From positions 186,001-250,000 of the IMG/VR virus record IMGVR_UViG_3300032675_000001: a DNA stretch of 64,000 bases; one strand, written 5' to 3'. The stretch's first letter is position 1, and each line of letters begins with the position of its first letter. The position numbers and the translations under genes are program-made. Under the pieces are notes generated by a model. It did no database searches, was not told the DNA's origin, and was given only the letters and a program-made list of their open reading frames with translations. Of the stretch, positions 5,304 through 58,339 are shown piece by piece.

Positions 5304-7634
5304 GTGACGACAAAAAATTTTACCGTTAAAAACGGACTTACAATAGGTGTCGCAAATATTGATGCCACAACAGGTAATGCTAATCTTGGTAACTTAGTTA
5401 CCAGTGGTCAGGCGAATCTTGCTTCATTGGTTGTTCCCGGCACTTCAAACTTAGGTTCAGTCGGTAACATCACAATAACTGGTGGTACATCAGGATACTA
5501 TCTCCAAACAAATGGGTCAGGTGGGCTTTCTTGGCAACCCATTTCAGTTGGTACTGCACTCCAGAATGGTAACTCAAATGTTACTGTAACTGCTAACTCA
5601 AATGTCAATACTTCTGTTGCTGGTGTTGCTAACGTATTTGTAGTAACAAGTACTGGGGTCAATGTCGCTGGAACTTTAAATGCAACAGGTAATGCTAACA
5701 CCGGTAACATCGGTGCAACATTTGGTGTATTTACTAACGTAAGCGGTAATGGTTCTACCCTATCATCTATAAATGGAGCAAATGTAACCGGTACTGTAGC
5801 TAACGCAACGTATGCAACGAGTGCTGGCTCCGCCACTAGTGCAACTACTGCTGGTACGGTAACCACAAATGCACAACCAAACATCACATCTGTTGGCACA
5901 CTGACTTCACTTGCTGTTACTGGAAATACAACTTCAAATAATTTTGTTGCAAGTACTACTAATATAGTTACTTCAAATGCAGTAACTATTCCTTCAGGAA
6001 CTGCCGTGGTATACGCCAGCCAGCAAGGAGGAAGAACTTATATTTCATACGATATGAACACATATCCTTCCTTGTACGAAGCAAGATTTGTCAATATCGG
6101 TACTAGTACTAATGTTCCAACTGGGGCTACCGGTGATGGTTATTGGTTTGGTATGGGAGCAGGAGATGTTGCCAGTAGGGGATATGATTTATTTGGTACT
6201 TCTGGAAATCAGTTCTTTGCTAGATCACGAGAAAATGGAAACGCAGGATGGATACAGCTAGCAAGTAACGTTAGCGGTACGGTATTAACTGCTAGTACAG
6301 TAACAACTAATGCCCAACCGAATATCACTAGTGCTACTAACTTAACAAGTATTGGTGCATTGGGTTCATTGACGGTTACTGGAAACGCCACTGTTGGTAA
6401 CTTGATAGGTCCTCACGCAAATGGAAACTCAAACGTAAGTATTCCTGTTGCCAATGGAAACATCAATTTAACAGCGGGCGGCAACGTAACACTAGTTGTT
6501 ACGCCGACCAATGTTAGCGTAACAGGAAGTACTGCTACTGTAATAGCAGACTCGGCTGCTACCGCCGATTCGGTTCTAATTTTAGAAGTAAAGAATGGTA
6601 CTCAAAATTTGGGTGTTATGGCTAATGCAAGTGCTGGTAGCTATAATCCATTGGTGGGTGTAAATGATATAACATTAGTAGGATCAAATAATTCTACCGG
6701 TGGTGAAGGTAATGTCAATATAAGTATAGTACCATGGTCAACTGGTTCAGGTGGTATTCGTATAATAACTACTAGCAACGTAACAACTGGCATAAACCTT
6801 GTAGCATCAACTACTACTATAACAGGTGTTGCAAACGTTACGGGAAATTTAAATGGTAGTAACATAGCCGCAGCTAATGGGACATTTGCTACTATAACTG
6901 GTACTACATTATCTTTTACTACAGTAAGTGGCACTACAGTAAATGCCGCCACACTAACTGGAGTTTTAACAACTAATGCACAGCCAAATATCACATCAGT
7001 AGGCACACTAACTTCATTATCGGTAACAGGTAATGCTAATGTTGGTAATTTGGGCACTACTGGACAGTTAATTTCAACAGTTGCAACTGGTACCGCTCCT
7101 TTAGTAGTATCTTCAACTACTCAAGTAAATAACCTAAATAGTCAGTATTTGAATGGTTTTACTTGGGCAATTCCTGCTGGTATAGGAACTACTACACCAA
7201 ACAGCGGTTCATTCACTACTCTAACGACAAGCGGTCTTACAACCCACAATGCTAACGTTGCAATGGGCAACAACTACATTACTTCACCAATCTTCAGTTG
7301 CTATAAAGAATATGTGAGTGCAATAACTATAAGTGGTTCTACGCAAACATTAGACTTATCTACCACTAACATTTTCAACATAACACTGACAGCAAATACT
7401 ACCCTATCGTTCATTAATCCACCTGCTGCTGGTATAGCTTACAGTTTCATGATATATTGTAAACAATACAATGTCGGAGGAAATACGATTACTTGGCCAT
7501 CATCAGTCAAGTTTCCAAATGGTTCTACTCCCTCATTGACTACCACTCAGAACTATATTGATATTCTGAATTTTTTCACACTTGATGGTGGTGTTACTTA
7601 TATTGGTGCACTATCACTGGCTAACGTTGCATAA
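5304..7634 (+). CDS. Tail fibre protein paralog (776 aa)
   Basis: N-terminus nearly identical to the 791 gene; AQPNITSVGTL repeats; C-terminal ITWPSSVKFP..DIL.F domain. Confidence 0.78.
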   Translation: MTTKNFTVKNGLTIGVANIDATTGNANLGNLVTSGQANLASLVVPGTSNLGSVGNITITGGTSGYYLQTNGSGGLSWQPISVGTALQNGNSNVTVTANSNVNTSVAGVANVFVVTSTGVNVAGTLNATGNANTGNIGATFGVFTNVSGNGSTLSSINGANVTGTVANATYATSAGSATSATTAGTVTTNAQPNITSVGTLTSLAVTGNTTSNNFVASTTNIVTSNAVTIPSGTAVVYASQQGGRTYISYDMNTYPSLYEARFVNIGTSTNVPTGATGDGYWFGMGAGDVASRGYDLFGTSGNQFFARSRENGNAGWIQLASNVSGTVLTASTVTTNAQPNITSATNLTSIGALGSLTVTGNATVGNLIGPHANGNSNVSIPVANGNINLTAGGNVTLVVTPTNVSVTGSTATVIADSAATADSVLILEVKNGTQNLGVMANASAGSYNPLVGVNDITLVGSNNSTGGEGNVNISIVPWSTGSGGIRIITTSNVTTGINLVASTTTITGVANVTGNLNGSNIAAANGTFATITGTTLSFTTVSGTTVNAATLTGVLTTNAQPNITSVGTLTSLSVTGNANVGNLGTTGQLISTVATGTAPLVVSSTTQVNNLNSQYLNGFTWAIPAGIGTTTPNSGSFTTLTTSGLTTHNANVAMGNNYITSPIFSCYKEYVSAITISGSTQTLDLSTTNIFNITLTANTTLSFINPPAAGIAYSFMIYCKQYNVGGNTITWPSSVKFPNGSTPSLTTTQNYIDILNFFTLDGGVTYIGALSLANVA

Positions 7635-30379: not shown

Positions 30380-30454
30380 GCGTCTGAGGTTGAGTGGCAT
30401 CACACGGGTCTCTAAAGCTCAGGATAGCGGGTTCGAATCCTGCCAGACGCGCCA
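30380..30454 (+). tRNA. Amber suppressor tRNA (anticodon CTA)
   Basis: Acceptor GCGTCTG/CAGACGC plus GCCA; T arm GCGGG-TTCGAAT-CCTGC; loop CT-CTA-AA in a wobble-rich CGGGT/GCTCA stem. Confidence 0.75.
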
Positions 30455-44019: not shown

Positions 44020-44214
44020 ATGTACAAGAAAACTGCAAAAGCGACACAACGAAAAATGATGAAGACTGCAGAATATGCACCAAGTCTCGCTACTTTATAT
44101 GATAAACATGACAAATCACAGTGGTCCGCTAAAACCATTAACCGAGCGATTTCTTCTACAAAGAAAAGAAGGAAAAACTTTGGAAATTATATGTTTGGTA
44201 TGAAGTTCCGTTAA
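44020..44214 (+). CDS. Small basic hypothetical protein
   Basis: AGGAG RBS before ATG 44020. Confidence 0.55.
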   Translation: MYKKTAKATQRKMMKTAEYAPSLATLYDKHDKSQWSAKTINRAISSTKKRRKNFGNYMFGMKFR

Positions 44215-44334
44215 ACATCTATTACTTGAGAACATTGAGATTTAAACACACGCCCTCTTACCATGAATAAGAGACTAGCACATCAGAAATGTTTTCAAGT
44301 AACAGATGTATTATAAATATCACGCAGGATTCAT

Positions 44335-44408
44335 TGCCCCTTCGTCTAAAGGTAGGACAACAGATTTTGATTCTGTTTACGTTGGTTCGAGTCCAGCAGG
44401 GGCATCCA
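44335..44408 (+). tRNA. trnQ: tRNA-Gln(TTG)
   Basis: ACAGA-TTTTGAT-TCTGT; CCA end. Confidence 0.9.
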
Positions 44409-44425
44409 AACTCTTATAAAATAAT

Positions 44426-44500
44426 GCTGCTTTAGCTCAGTGGTAGAGCAACGCATTAGTAATGCGTAGGTCGTCAGTTCGAATCCGACAAGCAGCACCA
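44426..44500 (+). tRNA. trnT: tRNA-Thr(AGT)
   Basis: ACGCA-TTAGTAA-TGCGT. Confidence 0.9.
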
Positions 44501-44507
44501 GAAAAAT

Positions 44508-44584
44508 GGTCCCTTAGTTCAGTGGAATAGAGCGCCTGTCTTCGAAACAGGATGTCGGGAGTTCGAATCTCTCAGGGACTACCA
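44508..44584 (+). tRNA. trnR: tRNA-Arg(TCG)
   Basis: CCTGT-CTTCGAA-ACAGG. Confidence 0.9.
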
Positions 44585-44798
44585 GATTACCTTGTCCTGA
44601 CTGTGAAGAAGGAAACCCGTAACCCTTGATATCCGCAGTGTCCGCCAAGGATGAGTCGGAAGGGAAAAGTTGGAACAAAGCATTCGGGTCCAACAAGGTA
44701 TATAGTTTCGCCGGATTACTAAACAGCGGTTCCTAGGTCTGCCGTGGTGTTTACCGGTAGAGGTTCCCGATACCTCTATAAAAACAGGGAGAATTCAT

Positions 44799-44875
44799 GC
44801 AGCCATAGCTCAACTGGATAGAGCATCGGTCTACGAAACCGAAGGTTATAGGTTCAAAGCCTATTGGTTGCACCA
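44799..44875 (+). tRNA. trnR: tRNA-Arg(ACG)
   Basis: TCGGT-CTACGAA-ACCGA. Confidence 0.9.
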
Positions 44876-44882
44876 TTTTCAT

Positions 44883-44957
44883 TGACTAATAGTATAATGG
44901 TAATGCACTTCGCTGTTAACGAAGGTTATGTAGGTTCGAGTCCTACTTAGTCAGCCA
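44883..44957 (+). tRNA. trnN: tRNA-Asn(GTT)
   Basis: CTTCG-CTGTTAA-CGAAG. Confidence 0.88.
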
Positions 44958-45001
44958 TTTTAACACTTGACATTGTTTCACAATCTGATAGAGTAACACA
45001 C

Positions 45002-45424
45002 ATGAGCTATCATCTTTTTCTTGACGATGAACGTGTCCCCAGTCAGGTGACTTGGGTTGCGATTCCGGATGACGTTTATCACGTTGTGCGCAGCTACGAT
45101 GATTTTGTAGCTATGATTACTCAATGTGGTGTTCCATCATTCGTGACGTTTGACCATGACCTTGCTGATGTTCACTATCAGCATATGCTCAGAGATTGTC
45201 AGCAGAACAGTACTGGACAGTTGTTGTTCGCTGTTGCTGATCAAGTGTCTGATTACGACTATGGTCCAGAGAAGACCGGATACGATTGTGCTAAGTGGCT
45301 TGTTGATTATTGTGCAGACAATGGTGTCAAGTTTCCAGAATACACGGTTCATTCTATGAACCCTATCGGTGGCAAGCGTATCAAAGATTACGTTGAGAAT
45401 GCTAAAAAGCATCTTGACATTTAA
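45002..45424 (+). CDS. Cyclic-phosphate-processing receiver-like domain protein
   Basis: LFLDDER, FDHDL, TGYDCAKWL, HSMNP.G. Confidence 0.7.
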   Translation: MSYHLFLDDERVPSQVTWVAIPDDVYHVVRSYDDFVAMITQCGVPSFVTFDHDLADVHYQHMLRDCQQNSTGQLLFAVADQVSDYDYGPEKTGYDCAKWLVDYCADNGVKFPEYTVHSMNPIGGKRIKDYVENAKKHLDI

Positions 45425-45427
45425 TAT

Positions 45428-45503
45428 GGTGTTTGTAGCTCAGTGGTAGAGCGGCGGTTTGTGGTACCGCATGTCGCGGGTTCGATCCCCGTCTTACACC
45501 CCA
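45428..45503 (+). tRNA. trnH: tRNA-His(GTG) with G-1:C73
   Basis: GCGGT-TTGTGGT-ACCGC; two T-T mismatches in the acceptor stem. Confidence 0.85.
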
Positions 45504-45532
45504 GTTTACGTGCGTGAATGATAAATAGAGTT

Positions 45533-45754
45533 ATGGTAGACTTAACTTTCTTTAATCCGTATGGAAGAATGTTTGGGATTTCCCTTATCATTCTTGGCTT
45601 CTTTATCCTAGTAGCAGGTGCGCTGGGTGGCTTGGGTTTGTGGGTATACTATCTTGCAACTCATGGTCAGATTCCTCTTGCAATCCTAGTTACTGGATCA
45701 AGTTGCATTATCCTTGGATGGATCATCAAACTTATTTTTCGTTCACGTACTTAA
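45533..45754 (+). CDS. Small membrane protein
   Basis: Two hydrophobic helices; TAAATA upstream. Confidence 0.55.
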   Translation: MVDLTFFNPYGRMFGISLIILGFFILVAGALGGLGLWVYYLATHGQIPLAILVTGSSCIILGWIIKLIFRSRT

Positions 45755-45755
45755 C

Positions 45756-45830
45756 GCATCCTTAGCTCAGTGGTAGAGCATCTGCTCGACACGCAGAAGG
45801 TCGTTGGTTCGAAACCATCAGGATGCACCA
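45756..45830 (+). tRNA. trnV: tRNA-Val(GAC)
   Basis: TCTGC-TCGACAC-GCAGA (C33). Confidence 0.88.
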
Positions 45831-45836
45831 GTTTAT

Positions 45837-46145
45837 GGCGGCGAGTGACACCACTATTTGGTGCACCGTAATAGTGACGAATGAACGTTACCACTGCCCC
45901 ATTTTGAAATCTATGTTTTCGTCGCAATGTGACATAGATATTATTATGCCGGGTACGGGTCATCGCGTATGATGCGACGAACATACGGCTCCTCCCGGCT
46001 CCAGTTTTATGCGCCCATCGTGCTGGTTTTGACTTCCAAAATCAGAAACGGCAGAGAAAAATAAGTGGGCGCGCCAATCTTATGCCCTTGGCTTGTATGA
46101 CTTTGTGGAGATGATTACAGCAAGACGAAAATTACAAGGGCACCA
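45837..46145 (+). ncRNA. Four short acceptor-stem/CCA tRNA-like RNAs lacking D and T arms (45837-45901, 45948-46003, 46011-46076, 46084-46145)
   Basis: Each has a 6-7 bp terminal stem, an internal hairpin and a CCA end. Confidence 0.6.
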
Positions 46146-46162
46146 AACTTAAGGAGAATGAC

Positions 46163-46342
46163 ATGAAGCGTGACATTTATTTCGCCAAGCCTAGCCTGAT
46201 CGAGCGTTGCTGTCCCGGTCATGATACTTTTCCTACTGAAACCTATAATAGCCGCCGCAGCAAGAAGGCTCGTAGCCGCGATAAGAAGCTTGAACATCGC
46301 ATGGCTCGTCATCTGCTGAATCGTGCTATTGATACTGAATAA
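46163..46342 (+). CDS. Small basic hypothetical protein (59 aa)
   Basis: AAGGAG RBS; MKRDIYFAKPSLIERCCPGHD... Confidence 0.55.
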   Translation: MKRDIYFAKPSLIERCCPGHDTFPTETYNSRRSKKARSRDKKLEHRMARHLLNRAIDTE

Positions 46343-46344
46343 AT

Positions 46345-46434
46345 GGAGTCGTGACAGAGTGGCCGAATGTGACACCCTGGAAAGGTGTTGTACTCGCAAG
46401 GGTACCGTGGGTTCGAATCCCACCGACTCCGCCA
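46345..46434 (+). tRNA. trnS: tRNA-Ser(GGA)
   Basis: ACACC-CTGGAAA-GGTGT; long variable arm. Confidence 0.92.
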
Positions 46435-46440
46435 AAATTG

Positions 46441-46594
46441 TGCAGTTTAGAAAAACGTTATCGGTGGTGGAAGCGGCATACACATCTGTCTAGGGAAATA
46501 GCGTCACAATAGCCCCGACAACGGACTTCGCGTAGTAAGTGACTAGCTAATGCGATTGCGGGTTCGAGTCCCGCCCACCTAAACTGCATTACCA
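46441..46594 (+). ncRNA. Expanded tRNA-like RNA
   Basis: TGCAGTTTAG/CTAAACTGCA closing stem, D-like segment and perfect T arm GCGGG-TTCGAGT-CCCGC. Confidence 0.55.
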
Positions 46595-46598
46595 ATAA

Positions 46599-46677
46599 CG
46601 AGCATTAGGAAAGTCTGGTTTAATCCGCCTGGTTTGGGACCAGGAGATCGTAGGTTCGAATCCTACATGCTCGACCA
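46599..46677 (+). tRNA. trnP: tRNA-Pro(TGG)
   Basis: CCTGG-TTTGGGA-CCAGG. Confidence 0.9.
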
Positions 46678-46757
46678 GTTAGAAGTCATTATCGTTAAGC
46701 TCGGATGTACAGTAAACGATAATGGTTTCGCCTTCTAAAATGTGATATATATAAGAA

Positions 46758-48356
46758 ATGAAAGAACATGGTTTAATATTTGGCGGTATGATCAATATGG
46801 ATGAATCCATCCATCCTAATGATTTGTTTGGCATCAGCTACAGTTCTGTTCGCCGTCATGCCGGGTCACATAGAATTGCGTCTTTCTTGCGCAATCGCGG
46901 AATGGATATTGAAGTCATAGATTATGCACCATCTTGGAAGTTTGAAGAATTCAAAGAACTAATAAATTCTAGAGTTCATTCTAAGACTAGATTTGTCGGT
47001 CTTGGTTCAATTTTTAATATGAACACTGAAACGTTGTACAGATGTTTTCATTGGCTAAAGCAAACATATCCGGACATCTTGATTATTACTGGGGCAACTG
47101 AGTTCCATAATGTTCATTTCATTCCTGCTGATTATATGGTTGTTGGCTACGGAGAACTCGCCATTTTGGAAATCCTCAAAGGAACAGCAAAATGGAACGA
47201 AGAAGTCATTGACAAGAACGGCAATACTCGTAAAACCGTTCATGCATTACGCGATTATCCAGCGTATCCGATGAAAAATTTGTCAATAGATTATGAACAG
47301 CGAGATTTCTTGCAGCCATATGAAGCAGTAACCATGGAAACTAGCCGTGGATGTAGATTCAAATGTGCTTTTTGTACATATTCGGTTCTTGGAGTCAAAG
47401 AAGATCACACTAGGGATGCACAAGACTTTAAAGACAATCTGATTCGCAACTATGATAATTTTGGCATATATCGCTATTCAATTGCTGATGAAACTTTCAA
47501 TGATTACACTGACAAAATCATCAAGTATGCAGATGTAGTTGACGGTCTATCATTTAGTCCAAATTTTGGTGGATATATTAGAGCGGACCTCCTTCATGCT
47601 CGTCCAAACGATATTGAACATCTAGCTAGAATGAGATTTAATGGTCAATTCTATGGAGTTGAGTCATTTCATAGACCTAGTGCAAAGATGATTGGTAAAG
47701 GTATGGAACCAGAAAAAATCCAACAGGCGATTCTGGATACCAAAGAGTATTTCATGAAACATCTTGGATACTATAAAGGGACTATCAGTCTTATTGTTGG
47801 CTTACCCAATGAGACTGAGGATACCTTACTGGAAACTAAAAAGTGGTGTGATGATAATTGGCAAACACAGCATGTTGCGTATACACCATTATTCATTACT
47901 ACTGACCACAACAATGTTAAACAGAGTACACTCACTGCAACATATAAAAAGCAGGGGTATACACTGGTAACACCTGATGATATAAAGCTAGATGAATCTC
48001 ATCCCGATTTAAAACTTATATTTTCTAGTAATTCTGTACCAACTGAAATAAAGAATTATATAAGAGTTTTCTTGAGAAATCTTGGTCCAACAGTTCTTTT
48101 TCATCATTGGAAAAGTAACACCGGAATGACTGAGCGAGACGCATTGCTTTGGATTTCAAAAAATGTATGGGGCACAGAAGATTACTTAAGATTCGGTGTA
48201 GACCACTGGCGCATGGATGAATGGTATATTGCAGGTAAGACTGATCAAGAAATGCTAGGATCATACCATGATTTAGGTGGAATACGTCCACCATCGCAAG
48301 TCAGAGTTGACTTCATTGAAGATTATAAGACTAAGAAACTCAACTACGTTTCTTAA
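46758..48356 (+). CDS. Radical SAM protein (B12-binding/class B-like architecture)
   Basis: ETSRGCRFKCAFC, ADETFN, YIRADL, GVESF, IVGLP.ET. Confidence 0.88.
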   Translation: MKEHGLIFGGMINMDESIHPNDLFGISYSSVRRHAGSHRIASFLRNRGMDIEVIDYAPSWKFEEFKELINSRVHSKTRFVGLGSIFNMNTETLYRCFHWLKQTYPDILIITGATEFHNVHFIPADYMVVGYGELAILEILKGTAKWNEEVIDKNGNTRKTVHALRDYPAYPMKNLSIDYEQRDFLQPYEAVTMETSRGCRFKCAFCTYSVLGVKEDHTRDAQDFKDNLIRNYDNFGIYRYSIADETFNDYTDKIIKYADVVDGLSFSPNFGGYIRADLLHARPNDIEHLARMRFNGQFYGVESFHRPSAKMIGKGMEPEKIQQAILDTKEYFMKHLGYYKGTISLIVGLPNETEDTLLETKKWCDDNWQTQHVAYTPLFITTDHNNVKQSTLTATYKKQGYTLVTPDDIKLDESHPDLKLIFSSNSVPTEIKNYIRVFLRNLGPTVLFHHWKSNTGMTERDALLWISKNVWGTEDYLRFGVDHWRMDEWYIAGKTDQEMLGSYHDLGGIRPPSQVRVDFIEDYKTKKLNYVS

Positions 48357-48364
48357 AATACTAT

Positions 48365-48450
48365 GGAGTGTGCTGAGGTTGGCTCCTCGCACTGTCTCGA
48401 AAACAGTAGGTACTGCAAGGTACATAGTTCGATGCTATCACACTCCGCCA
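48365..48450 (+). tRNA. trnS: tRNA-Ser(CGA), atypical 8/4 fold
   Basis: GGAGTGTG/CACACTCC 8-bp acceptor; ATAG/CTAT 4-bp T stem; ACTGT-CTCGAAA-ACAGT. Confidence 0.8.
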
Positions 48451-51294: not shown

Positions 51295-51387
51295 GCACCC
51301 GTAGCTCAATGGTAGAGCGGTGAGCTTATACCTCATGATCGGCAGATTACCGAACGGTTGGCGGTTCGAGTCCGTCCGGGTGCACCA
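51295..51387 (+). tRNA. trnI: tRNA with TAT (Ile) anticodon and long variable arm
   Basis: GTGAG-CTTATAC-CTCAT; variable arm TCGG/CCGA. Confidence 0.8.
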
Positions 51388-58254: not shown

Positions 58255-58339
58255 GGGGAGGTAAAGCCGATAGTTTCGGCAGTCGGTCTGTAAAACCGAC
58301 CTGTAAAAGGGAGTGGAGCGTAACCACACCTCCCCACCA
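58255..58339 (+). tRNA. trnY: tRNA-Tyr(GTA), atypical 8/4 fold with non-canonical T loop
   Basis: GGGGAGGT/ACCTCCCC; GTCGGT-CTGTAAA-ACCGAC; GTGG-AGCGTAA-CCAC. Confidence 0.75.

Follow-up and report, generated by a model that had tools for sequence, protein, structure and literature searches.

Clusters of tRNA genes in phages are usually read as a supply that suits codon usage or counters nucleases. What, then, are four short units that stand within such a cluster, end in CCA and have the acceptor end of a tRNA without its body? We addressed this question for positions 45837–46145 of a 64,000-nt stretch of DNA, the window, which comprises bases 186001–250000 of a 360,683-bp virus record with direct terminal repeats; the record is an assembly from lake-water metagenomes, and the phage is known only from metagenomes. 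The array consists of four units (U1–U4) of 65, 56, 66 and 62 nt on the 3′ side of a tRNA-Val gene, with a conserved hairpin (SP) between U1 and U2. We find that U1–U4 are genes for structured small RNAs and not decaying tRNAs. The elements of the array are as follows.

45837..45901, + strand: U1, 65 nt; 7-bp terminal helix GGCGGCG/CACTGCC (one G·U, one C·A); no discriminator; contains GACGAA
45902..45947, + strand: SP, 46-nt conserved hairpin without a CCA end; stem AUCUAUGU/ACAUAGAU, loop UUUUCGUCGCAAUGUGA
45948..46003, + strand: U2, 56 nt; 6-bp terminal helix GCCGGG/CCCGGC plus U·U; discriminator U; CCA
46011..46076, + strand: U3, 66 nt; 7-bp helix GCGCCCA/TGGGCGC; discriminator G; CCA; central 4–5-bp hairpin with the loop UUCCAAA
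46084..46145, + strand: U4, 62 nt; 7-bp helix GCCCUUG/CAAGGGC; discriminator A (G in the related lineage L120); CCA; carries GACGAAAA

Acceptor-like ends without a tRNA body

All four units of the window start with G, are closed by a G+C-rich terminal helix of 6–7 bp and end in CCA. Their leaders (gTTTAT for U1, attATTAT for U2, gtTTTAT for U3 and atCTTAT for U4) each end in TTAT, and the gaps between the elements are 6 nt (GTTTAT) from tRNA-Val to U1, 46 nt, occupied by SP, from U1 to U2, and 7 nt both from U2 to U3 and from U3 to U4. In U1 only four C follow CTG, so that the helix runs straight into CCA and leaves no discriminator base. The 3′ strand of this helix is CGCTGCC in three relatives and CGCTGCT in a fourth (L016), and the C·A of the window is a C–G pair in every relative. 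The interior of U1 forms hairpin A (CACCA/UGGUG, extended by GUG/CAC) and the 6-bp hairpin B (GUGACG/CGUUAC), which abuts the 3′ strand of the terminal helix at the position of a T arm; the predicted fold has −22.4 kcal/mol (z −2.7). U2 has the helix GGGU(C)/(G)GCUC as its second one, and its inner hairpin bears UGCGACGAA in the loop or on the 3′ side. U3 has an A-rich 3′ linker, AGAGAAAAAUAAG, and a predicted fold of −25.6 kcal/mol (z −3.7), whereas inside U2 and U4 the fold is ambiguous. Over 29 nt of its interior (45859–45887, UGGUGCA...GACGAAUGAACG), U1 also has 72% complementarity to tRNA-Val near the 3′ end of the latter (45802–45830), whose terminal UGCACCA it matches at all 7 nt; this may be chance, as the complementary part of U1 is deleted in one relative (L200).

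An earlier note, made from the letters of this stretch, had described four units of 56–66 nt with TTAT leaders, and their anatomy, read directly, confirms this, as it does the lack of a D arm and of a TTCGA loop. The acceptor-like stems that it listed are all present, those of U1 and U2 being longer than given (7 bp with the G·U and C·A, and an additional U·U, respectively). Its term armless fits U2–U4 better than U1 with hairpin B, and its term CCA-terminated holds for all four window units and not for U1 throughout the relatives, where the tail over five lineages is CCA, CCA, CCA, UCA (L016) and CUA (L200). The series C, T, G, A that it gave for the base before CCA has to be abandoned, since U1 has no discriminator and that of U4 is G in L120, and the stretch of 46 nt between U1 and U2 is no mere spacer, being the conserved hairpin SP. 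The motif GACGAA, which it saw in three units, is indeed present in U1, U2 and U4 and absent from U3; a 6-mer common to at least three units arose in 81 of 5,000 interior shuffles (1.6%).

Neither ARAGORN with default settings nor Rfam at the gathering score reported anything in the units, Rfam 15 at E ≤ 10 gave no match overlapping 45837–46145, and ARAGORN at an 80% threshold and in its standard mitochondrial mode called no unit, indicating that the units have no cloverleaf and no T loop. A canonical tRNA body (D arm, anticodon arm and T arm with a UUCRANY loop) was found in none of them. The tRNA-type end (7-bp acceptor stem, discriminator, CCA and RNase P-type leader) was complete in U3 and U4, reduced to 6 bp plus U·U in U2 and without a discriminator in U1. 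Where a tRNA has its D arm, an anticodon arm with a conserved anticodon and a T loop, each unit has hairpins of its own.

A strict rule for such ends (G start, 7 bp with at most one G·U and at least four G–C, N-CCA, 45–75 nt) yielded about 2.3 expected matches per 360-kb strand in shuffled genomes, and 7 non-tRNA matches on the + strand and 2 on the − strand of the real genome. U3 and U4 are two adjacent matches to this rule, U1 and U2 are near-misses, and all of them tile the site in phase. The matches elsewhere (four on the + strand were inspected, with no check of open reading frames (ORFs)) lie in coding-like sequence and have no A/T leader. The shuffled-genome expectation, together with the nature of the other matches, indicates that the array is not a product of chance. 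The genome holds no paralogues of the units, the units are not alike among themselves, and Tandem Repeats Finder detected no tandem repeats in the array. A protein-coding reading of 45823–45972 (+) or 45751–45984 (−) was rejected because of 1-nt indels between lineages, and SP, considered as a sigma-70 promoter or an intrinsic terminator, was flagged by neither scan.

Conservation, covariation and modular make-up

The array was compared among six lineages, namely the window and the related L090, L120, L016, L200 and L024, and in every one of them it lies between tRNA-Val(GAC) and tRNA-Ser(GGA). L090 (also fetched as L094) and L120 have the full order U1–SP–U2–U3–U4; L016 (also L014, L095, L118 and L119) has U1–SP–U2–U3 and no U4; L200 has a shortened U1 followed by U3, with no SP, U2 or U4; and L024 (also L167 and L191) has U3 only. 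The U3 homologues of L200 (6886–6950, loop UUCCGAA) and L024 (5455–5523, loop UUCCAAC, motif AGAAAAAC) both stand before tRNA-Ser(GGA), and the L024 unit was taken as a U3 homologue because it is syntenic, shares the AGAAAAAC motif and has a UUCCA loop. The make-up of the array is thus modular, the gain and loss of units being observed directly; by this distribution U3 is its oldest and most widespread member and U4 its most restricted one.

Covariation is strongest for U3. Both its helices, the terminal one and the inner one of 4 bp, have every cell paired (100%) in an alignment of five lineages, both sides have changed in 6 of the 11 pairs, and none of 500 column shuffles reached any of the four measures used; sliding the partners by 1–3 columns reduced pairing to only 27–44%, and covariation was also computed with four lineages. 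The U1 homologues (L090, L120, L016 and L200) show changes in hairpin B (U–A/U·G and G·U/G–C) that keep pairing, and the sole unpaired cell of the terminal helix is the C·A of the window itself. In L200, U1 is reduced to 53 nt by the lack of hairpin A and retains the terminal helix stacked on hairpin B (z −4.7). U2 varies in three of its 56 columns: a G–C to G·U and a U·G to C–G change retain pairing, and the third breaks a pair of the minimum-free-energy hairpin, yet lies in the loop of an alternative hairpin, CGUAUG/CAUACG. All four changes of the L090 U4 that fall in proposed stems are switches between wobble and Watson–Crick pairs. Between the window and L016, 11 of 168 positions (6.5%) differ over U1, SP and U2, versus 14 of 44 fourfold sites (32%) of the neighbouring cRec gene (Fisher p = 3e-5), a neutral baseline that is approximate because the region is mosaic.

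The turnover of such clusters might suggest that the units are functionless, either tRNA pseudogenes in decay or the products of recent internal deletions: the tRNA clusters of phages turn over fast, orthologous tRNAs of these lineages differ by up to one third and units have been lost in some lineages. We consider this extremely improbable in view of the compensatory helix changes, a divergence slower than that of fourfold sites, terminal stems that are intact in every lineage, and interiors unrelated to the phage tRNAs, the best global alignment of each unit with any of the 45 tRNAs of the phage scoring no higher than those of interior-shuffled units. The earlier note had likewise argued against simple decay, and had named covariation among homologues and derivation from normal tRNAs by recent deletion as the points on which its view would stand or fall; the covariation is there in U3, and the interiors are no closer to the phage tRNAs than shuffled ones. 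Its class of processed small RNAs stands insofar as these are structured RNA genes and not debris, whose processing may be presumed from their tRNA-style layout.

Wider searches added little to this family. Covariance models of U3 (R1 and R2), run over some 0.9 Mb of related loci, brought up no additional member, and with filters off the model scored positions 406–471 of contig L092 at 13.9 bits (E 0.39) and the L024 unit at 8.1 bits, no better than ordinary tRNAs. The L092 match, the best one outside the family, is a 66-nt unit after tRNA-Cys in an unrelated 184-kb viral contig, with a 7-bp GGCUCGU/ACGGGCC helix, discriminator G, CCA and the loop UUCCAAA, and may be either remotely related to U3 or the result of convergence. 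A scan with a 15-mer pattern of U2 returned mostly chance matches and one further contig, a 20-mer scan of metagenomes for SP added one lineage, L120, and the 78 matches to a U3 descriptor pattern brought no lineage beyond the known ones; none of 185,579 genomes of bacteria and archaea contains the U2 core. The more distant cRec-linked contigs L197–L199 and L201–L207 have odd tRNAs and no units. A radical-SAM neighbour was dropped as a synteny anchor, as its relatives are not adjacent to such arrays. In L024, about 550 nt of noncoding DNA 3′ of tRNA-Ser (5624–6170) carry a TAATAAGTCTT motif twice and several apparent hairpins, as judged by eye.

Operon context, proposed role and rival explanations

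The array lies in a group of genes on one strand, of which the following bear on its expression and surroundings.

44967..44994, + strand: candidate sigma-70-type promoter, TTGACA-16-TAGAGT; consensus scan, 10/12 matches, a consensus match only
45002–45424, + strand: cRec (cyclic-phosphate processing receiver) gene, inside the tRNA cluster and behind the candidate promoter at 44967–44994
45756..45830, + strand: tRNA-Val(GAC), canonical, found by ARAGORN and Rfam; directly upstream of the array, with its CCA end 6 nt before U1
46163–46342, + strand: ORF for a 59-aa basic protein with CCPGH, 3′ of U4; no Pfam match

After the candidate promoter come cRec, tRNA-His, a 78-aa ORF, tRNA-Val, the array, the 59-aa ORF, tRNA-Ser, an RNA termed X and described below, and tRNA-Pro, and no terminator-like site was found on the + strand over 44200–46800. 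All related arrays retain the tRNA-Val(GAC) gene, the D stem of which shows a compensatory change. The 59-aa ORF, whose Shine–Dalgarno sequence begins 5 nt past the CCA of U4, is found in the window, in L120 and in L201 (6852–7031) and is absent from L090 and L016; in L090 tRNA-Ser directly follows the array with no ORF between, and in L201 the interval between tRNA-Val and tRNA-Ser holds only this ORF and no unit. Proteins of the cRec family, common in T4-like and jumbo phages, are predicted to remove 2′,3′-cyclic RNA ends for ligases and have been linked to RNA repair in jumbo phages; the homologues of this one in cultured phages all have <45% identity.

ARAGORN found 43 tRNA genes in the whole genome, all on the + strand at 216–256 kb, with 35 of them in the window, and two more that it missed bring the total to 45. 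They share a layout of an A/T leader that is nearly always T-final, G+1, an encoded CCA (44 of 45) and a tandem spacing of 5–7 nt, and include canonical tRNAs for all 20 amino acids, Trp among them. No CCA-adding enzyme encoded by the phage was found, so the CCA ends of the units would be genomic or host-repaired. Searches with megablast, blastn and tblastn for close relatives among cultured phages found none, the matches being tRNA parts only.

Several of these tRNAs are unusual in themselves. The two that ARAGORN and Rfam overlooked are cloverleaf tRNAs at 48365–48450 and 58255–58339 (+), the first of class II with anticodon CGA (Ser) and the T arm AUAG UUCGAUG CUAU, the second with anticodon GUA (Tyr) and the T loop AGCGUAA; related contigs, too, contain tRNAs with such odd T loops. 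About 14 kb upstream of the main cluster, at 30380–30454 (+), stands an amber-suppressor tRNA, anticodon CUA, to which ARAGORN gives the label Pyl, and tRNA-Ile(UAU) at 51295–51387 (+), at 93 nt far above class I size, may carry an insertion or an intron.

From this setting we infer that the units are transcribed, processed and directed in trans at a target. We propose, and give the proposal an even chance, that U1–U4 are independent small-RNA genes of the tRNA operon, under selection, whose RNAs, once cut out by RNase P, would mimic the tRNA acceptor end in trans. The tRNA-style leader, helix and CCA make excision by the tRNA-processing machinery the natural reading of the sequence, in which the apparent features of an RNase P substrate (a helix of about 7 bp or more, 3′ RCCA and U at −1) occur in all four units, except N73 in U1. 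Bacterial RNase P correctly cleaves model hairpins composed of an acceptor stem and a T stem–loop, and the 3′ RCCA pairs with RNase P RNA (PMC11143913). The units would be co-transcribed with the flanking tRNAs, RNase P would cut at each G+1 and thereby free the 5–7-nt trailer of the preceding unit, and 3′ exonucleases would trim back to the encoded CCA, yielding stable CCA-ended RNAs of about 55–66 nt. In tandem tRNA transcripts, each RNase P cut exposes the next trailer to exonucleolytic trimming.

The features that are common to the units and under selection are the terminal helix and, in U2–U4, N73-CCA, which suggests that their partner recognizes the acceptor end. In trans, the units would occupy a protein that reads only the acceptor stem and 3′ end, such as a synthetase, a processing enzyme or a tRNA-end-modifying toxin of the host. 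Via GACGAA, SP would pair with U2 and, less strongly, with U4 and U1, as a partner or switch. The toxSAS toxins, which are implicated in antiphage defence, recognize the first five acceptor pairs and CCA, and one of them, FaRel2, efficiently modifies a tRNA-Gly minihelix; MenT toxins read the acceptor stem and CCA only and extend acceptor ends. The FaRel2 determinants (G1–C72, C2–G71, G4–C69 and Pu5–Py68) are all present in U2. We also count in favour of the proposal that the same operon encodes cRec, a predicted RNA-end repair enzyme, and that units are gained and lost between close lineages, like accessory or conflict cassettes.

The same processing signals could instead serve in cis, as entry points for RNase P and exonucleases that separate or protect tRNA-Val, the mRNA of the 59-aa ORF, tRNA-Ser and X RNA, the excised pieces being by-products. 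The units do lie between a tRNA and an ORF, with the Shine–Dalgarno sequence just past U4; the acceptor helix and end of U3 are more clearly conserved than its interior; mRNAs and operon transcripts are also RNase P substrates; and the number of units varies freely among lineages. We nevertheless regard this explanation as unlikely: a single unit would suffice, whereas arrays have as many as four, and SP besides; SP as a whole and the interiors of U1 and U2 are more conserved than fourfold sites; the inner hairpin of U3 covaries and keeps a UUCC loop across distant lineages; and L090 has an array with no ORF to release, as L201 has the ORF without a unit.

The hairpin of U3 raises another question, namely whether the units are reduced working tRNAs, either armless adaptors or carriers of an amino acid for a non-ribosomal transferase, with U3 for example Trp-like. 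Its loop is UUCCAAA in the window, whereas three lineages have UUCCAUA, L200 has UUCCGAA and L024 has UUCCAAC, and it is flanked by a conserved C·A or A·C mismatch in the geometry of an anticodon arm; the hairpin can be drawn as 5 bp (with C·A next to the loop) and a 7-nt loop with U33, CCA and A37, and the window loop nearly matches that of the phage tRNA-Trp (CUCCAAA). ARAGORN in mitochondrial mode, at a lowered score threshold only, calls U3 as Trp(cca) and U4 as His(gtg). U1, moreover, has a conserved G·U in its helix and a possible G−1:C73, and such elements allow minihelices to be charged with Ala and His. The candidate triplets are, however, not conserved, which weakens the idea of an adaptor or donor: that of U3 is CCA or, in L200, CCG, with U at position 37 in three lineages, that of U4 is GUG or GCG, and no unit has a 7-nt loop with U33 and the same anticodon among orthologues, U1 and U2 having no credible anticodon loop at all. 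The canonical tRNAs of the phage already cover all 20 amino acids, and bacterial EF-Tu and ribosomes are, to our knowledge, not known to accept tRNAs that lack both arms. The units are not translational adaptors, and we hold any role as reduced tRNAs to be very unlikely. The narrower view of U3 as a tRNA-Trp mimic (CCA loop and G73) is weakened by the CCG of L200 and the U37 of three lineages.

SP suggests yet another type of function, in which the tRNA-like ends serve only processing or stability and the interiors work by base pairing, the SP loop with U2, U4 or U1, or the units with other transcripts. SP (fold z −2.3) is a single-copy element of the genome, has one variable column in 46 among four lineages and is found only where U2 occurs, and these co-occurring elements are the most conserved ones of the array. 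Their complementarity is read directly: SP TTCGTCGCA (45918–45926) and U2 TGCGACGAA (45973–45981) are 100% complementary over 9 nt, and the SP loop contains UUCGUCGCA, the exact complement of U2 UGCGACGAA. The predicted SP–U2 duplex has 9 contiguous and 6 more pairs at −18.6 kcal/mol (z −3.9, reached by 1 of 500 shuffles), the predicted pairing of SP with U4 has p = 0.04, and the loop is also complementary to GACGAA(AA) of U1, U2 and U4. The sharing of GACGAA exceeds chance, and the motif recurs in the X RNA of three lineages. On the other side, SP and U2 are predicted to stay separate domains when folded in cis, so that a loop–loop contact is no more than a possibility; the duplex shows no covariation, as nothing in it varies; U3 is without the motif; and no target was found outside the array. 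We judge a role confined to base pairing to be quite improbable, less so than reduced tRNAs and more so than cis-acting modules.

Several points weigh against our proposal of acceptor-end mimics. RNA libraries and metatranscriptomes matched only conserved tRNA parts of other organisms and left the units uncovered. U1 has no discriminator, and with its tails of UCA and CUA in L016 and L200 a CCA end is not essential for every unit. U2–U4 have no hairpin stacked on the terminal helix, and the efficiency of RNase P on them is uncertain. Against a catalytic toxin a decoy substrate is a weak means, short of very tight binding or very high abundance, so that a role as decoy or inhibitor is plausible and kinetically demanding. 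Last, the SP–U2 pairing and the folds of U2 and SP have no covariation support in the sequences of the six lineages, which offer three variable columns in U2 and one in SP.

An extension of the proposal, to which we assign a small chance, comparable to that of cis-acting modules, is that the array is a counter-defence cassette in which each unit would block or soak up a different acceptor-end toxin or enzyme (CapRel, FaRel2, MenT/AbiE or GNAT) and SP would gate U2; if so, the gain and loss of units would track the toxin repertoire of the hosts. Were the units decoys or inhibitors, they would be an RNA counterpart of the 'replacement tRNA' strategy and ready probes for toxins that read the acceptor stem. 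Independently of this, the array is a compact, covariation-backed case of a phage that keeps several RNAs with only the acceptor end of a tRNA, the part that is read by RNase P, several synthetases and an increasing number of defence toxins that target tRNA ends, and it shows that tRNA finders overlook these genes as well as at least two odd tRNAs of the same cluster.

Relation to known RNAs

The nearest precedents are RNAC and RNAD (species 1 and 2) of phage T4, stable RNAs of the T4 tRNA region whose function is still unknown (PMC3014915, PMC9697503). Like U1–U4, they are non-tRNA RNAs that abut tRNA genes in a phage tRNA cluster, on the tRNA strand. They differ in size (139 and 119 nt, compared with 56–66 nt and an array of up to four unrelated units) and in being known as stable transcripts, whereas the units are known here from their genes. 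RNAC, moreover, has a canonical T arm (CCGGG UUCGAAU CCCGG) and no encoded CCA, whereas the units have an encoded CCA and no T loop.

A closer analogue of RNAC than U1–U4 is the X RNA of the same operon (46441–46594, +), which is about 154 nt long, structured, and flanked by tRNA-Ser(GGA) and tRNA-Pro. Its terminal stem is perfect over 10 pairs, its tail is ACCA, its T arm is canonical (GCGGG UUCGAGU CCCGC), and no Rfam family matches it. X RNA is kept in L090, L016 and L200, with compensatory changes in 7 of 37 predicted pairs and the tails ACCA, ACCA, AUUUU and ACUA.

Laboratory minihelices and RNase P model hairpins share with the units a terminal helix that joins the two ends and a single-stranded (N)CCA, and in U1 also a second, stacked hairpin; they are synthetic, whereas the units are natural conserved genes in which a unit-specific interior of 40–50 nt replaces the T loop. 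The armless mitochondrial tRNAs of nematodes and mites likewise consist of an acceptor helix and a central hairpin, with linkers in place of the D and T arms and a length well below 76 nt, and U3 fits them best, with linkers of 11 and 20 nt around a 5-bp hairpin with a 7-nt loop. These tRNAs, however, have their own conserved anticodon, work in translation with co-adapted factors and receive CCA post-transcriptionally, whereas the triplets of the units vary and the units belong to a bacterial phage.

That tRNA machinery can make small, stable, non-decoding RNAs is known from the viral tRNAs (vtRNAs) of MHV68 and from mascRNA, tRNA-like RNAs that are processed and not charged; they differ from the units in being eukaryotic, in their cloverleaf-like body and in their enzymatically added CCA. 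In ToxI-type arrays, short RNAs from one transcript neutralize a defence toxin, and phages copy them as pseudo-ToxI. Both ToxI and the units are tandem arrays of short RNAs from one transcript, with the cutting of the units presumed; ToxI RNAs, however, are direct repeats cut by the toxin itself, whereas the units have no repeats, unrelated sequences and processing signals of the tRNA type. Small non-tRNA RNAs of phage tRNA operons are thus a kind already known, and what the array adds to it is RNAs of such an operon that mimic the acceptor ends of tRNAs.

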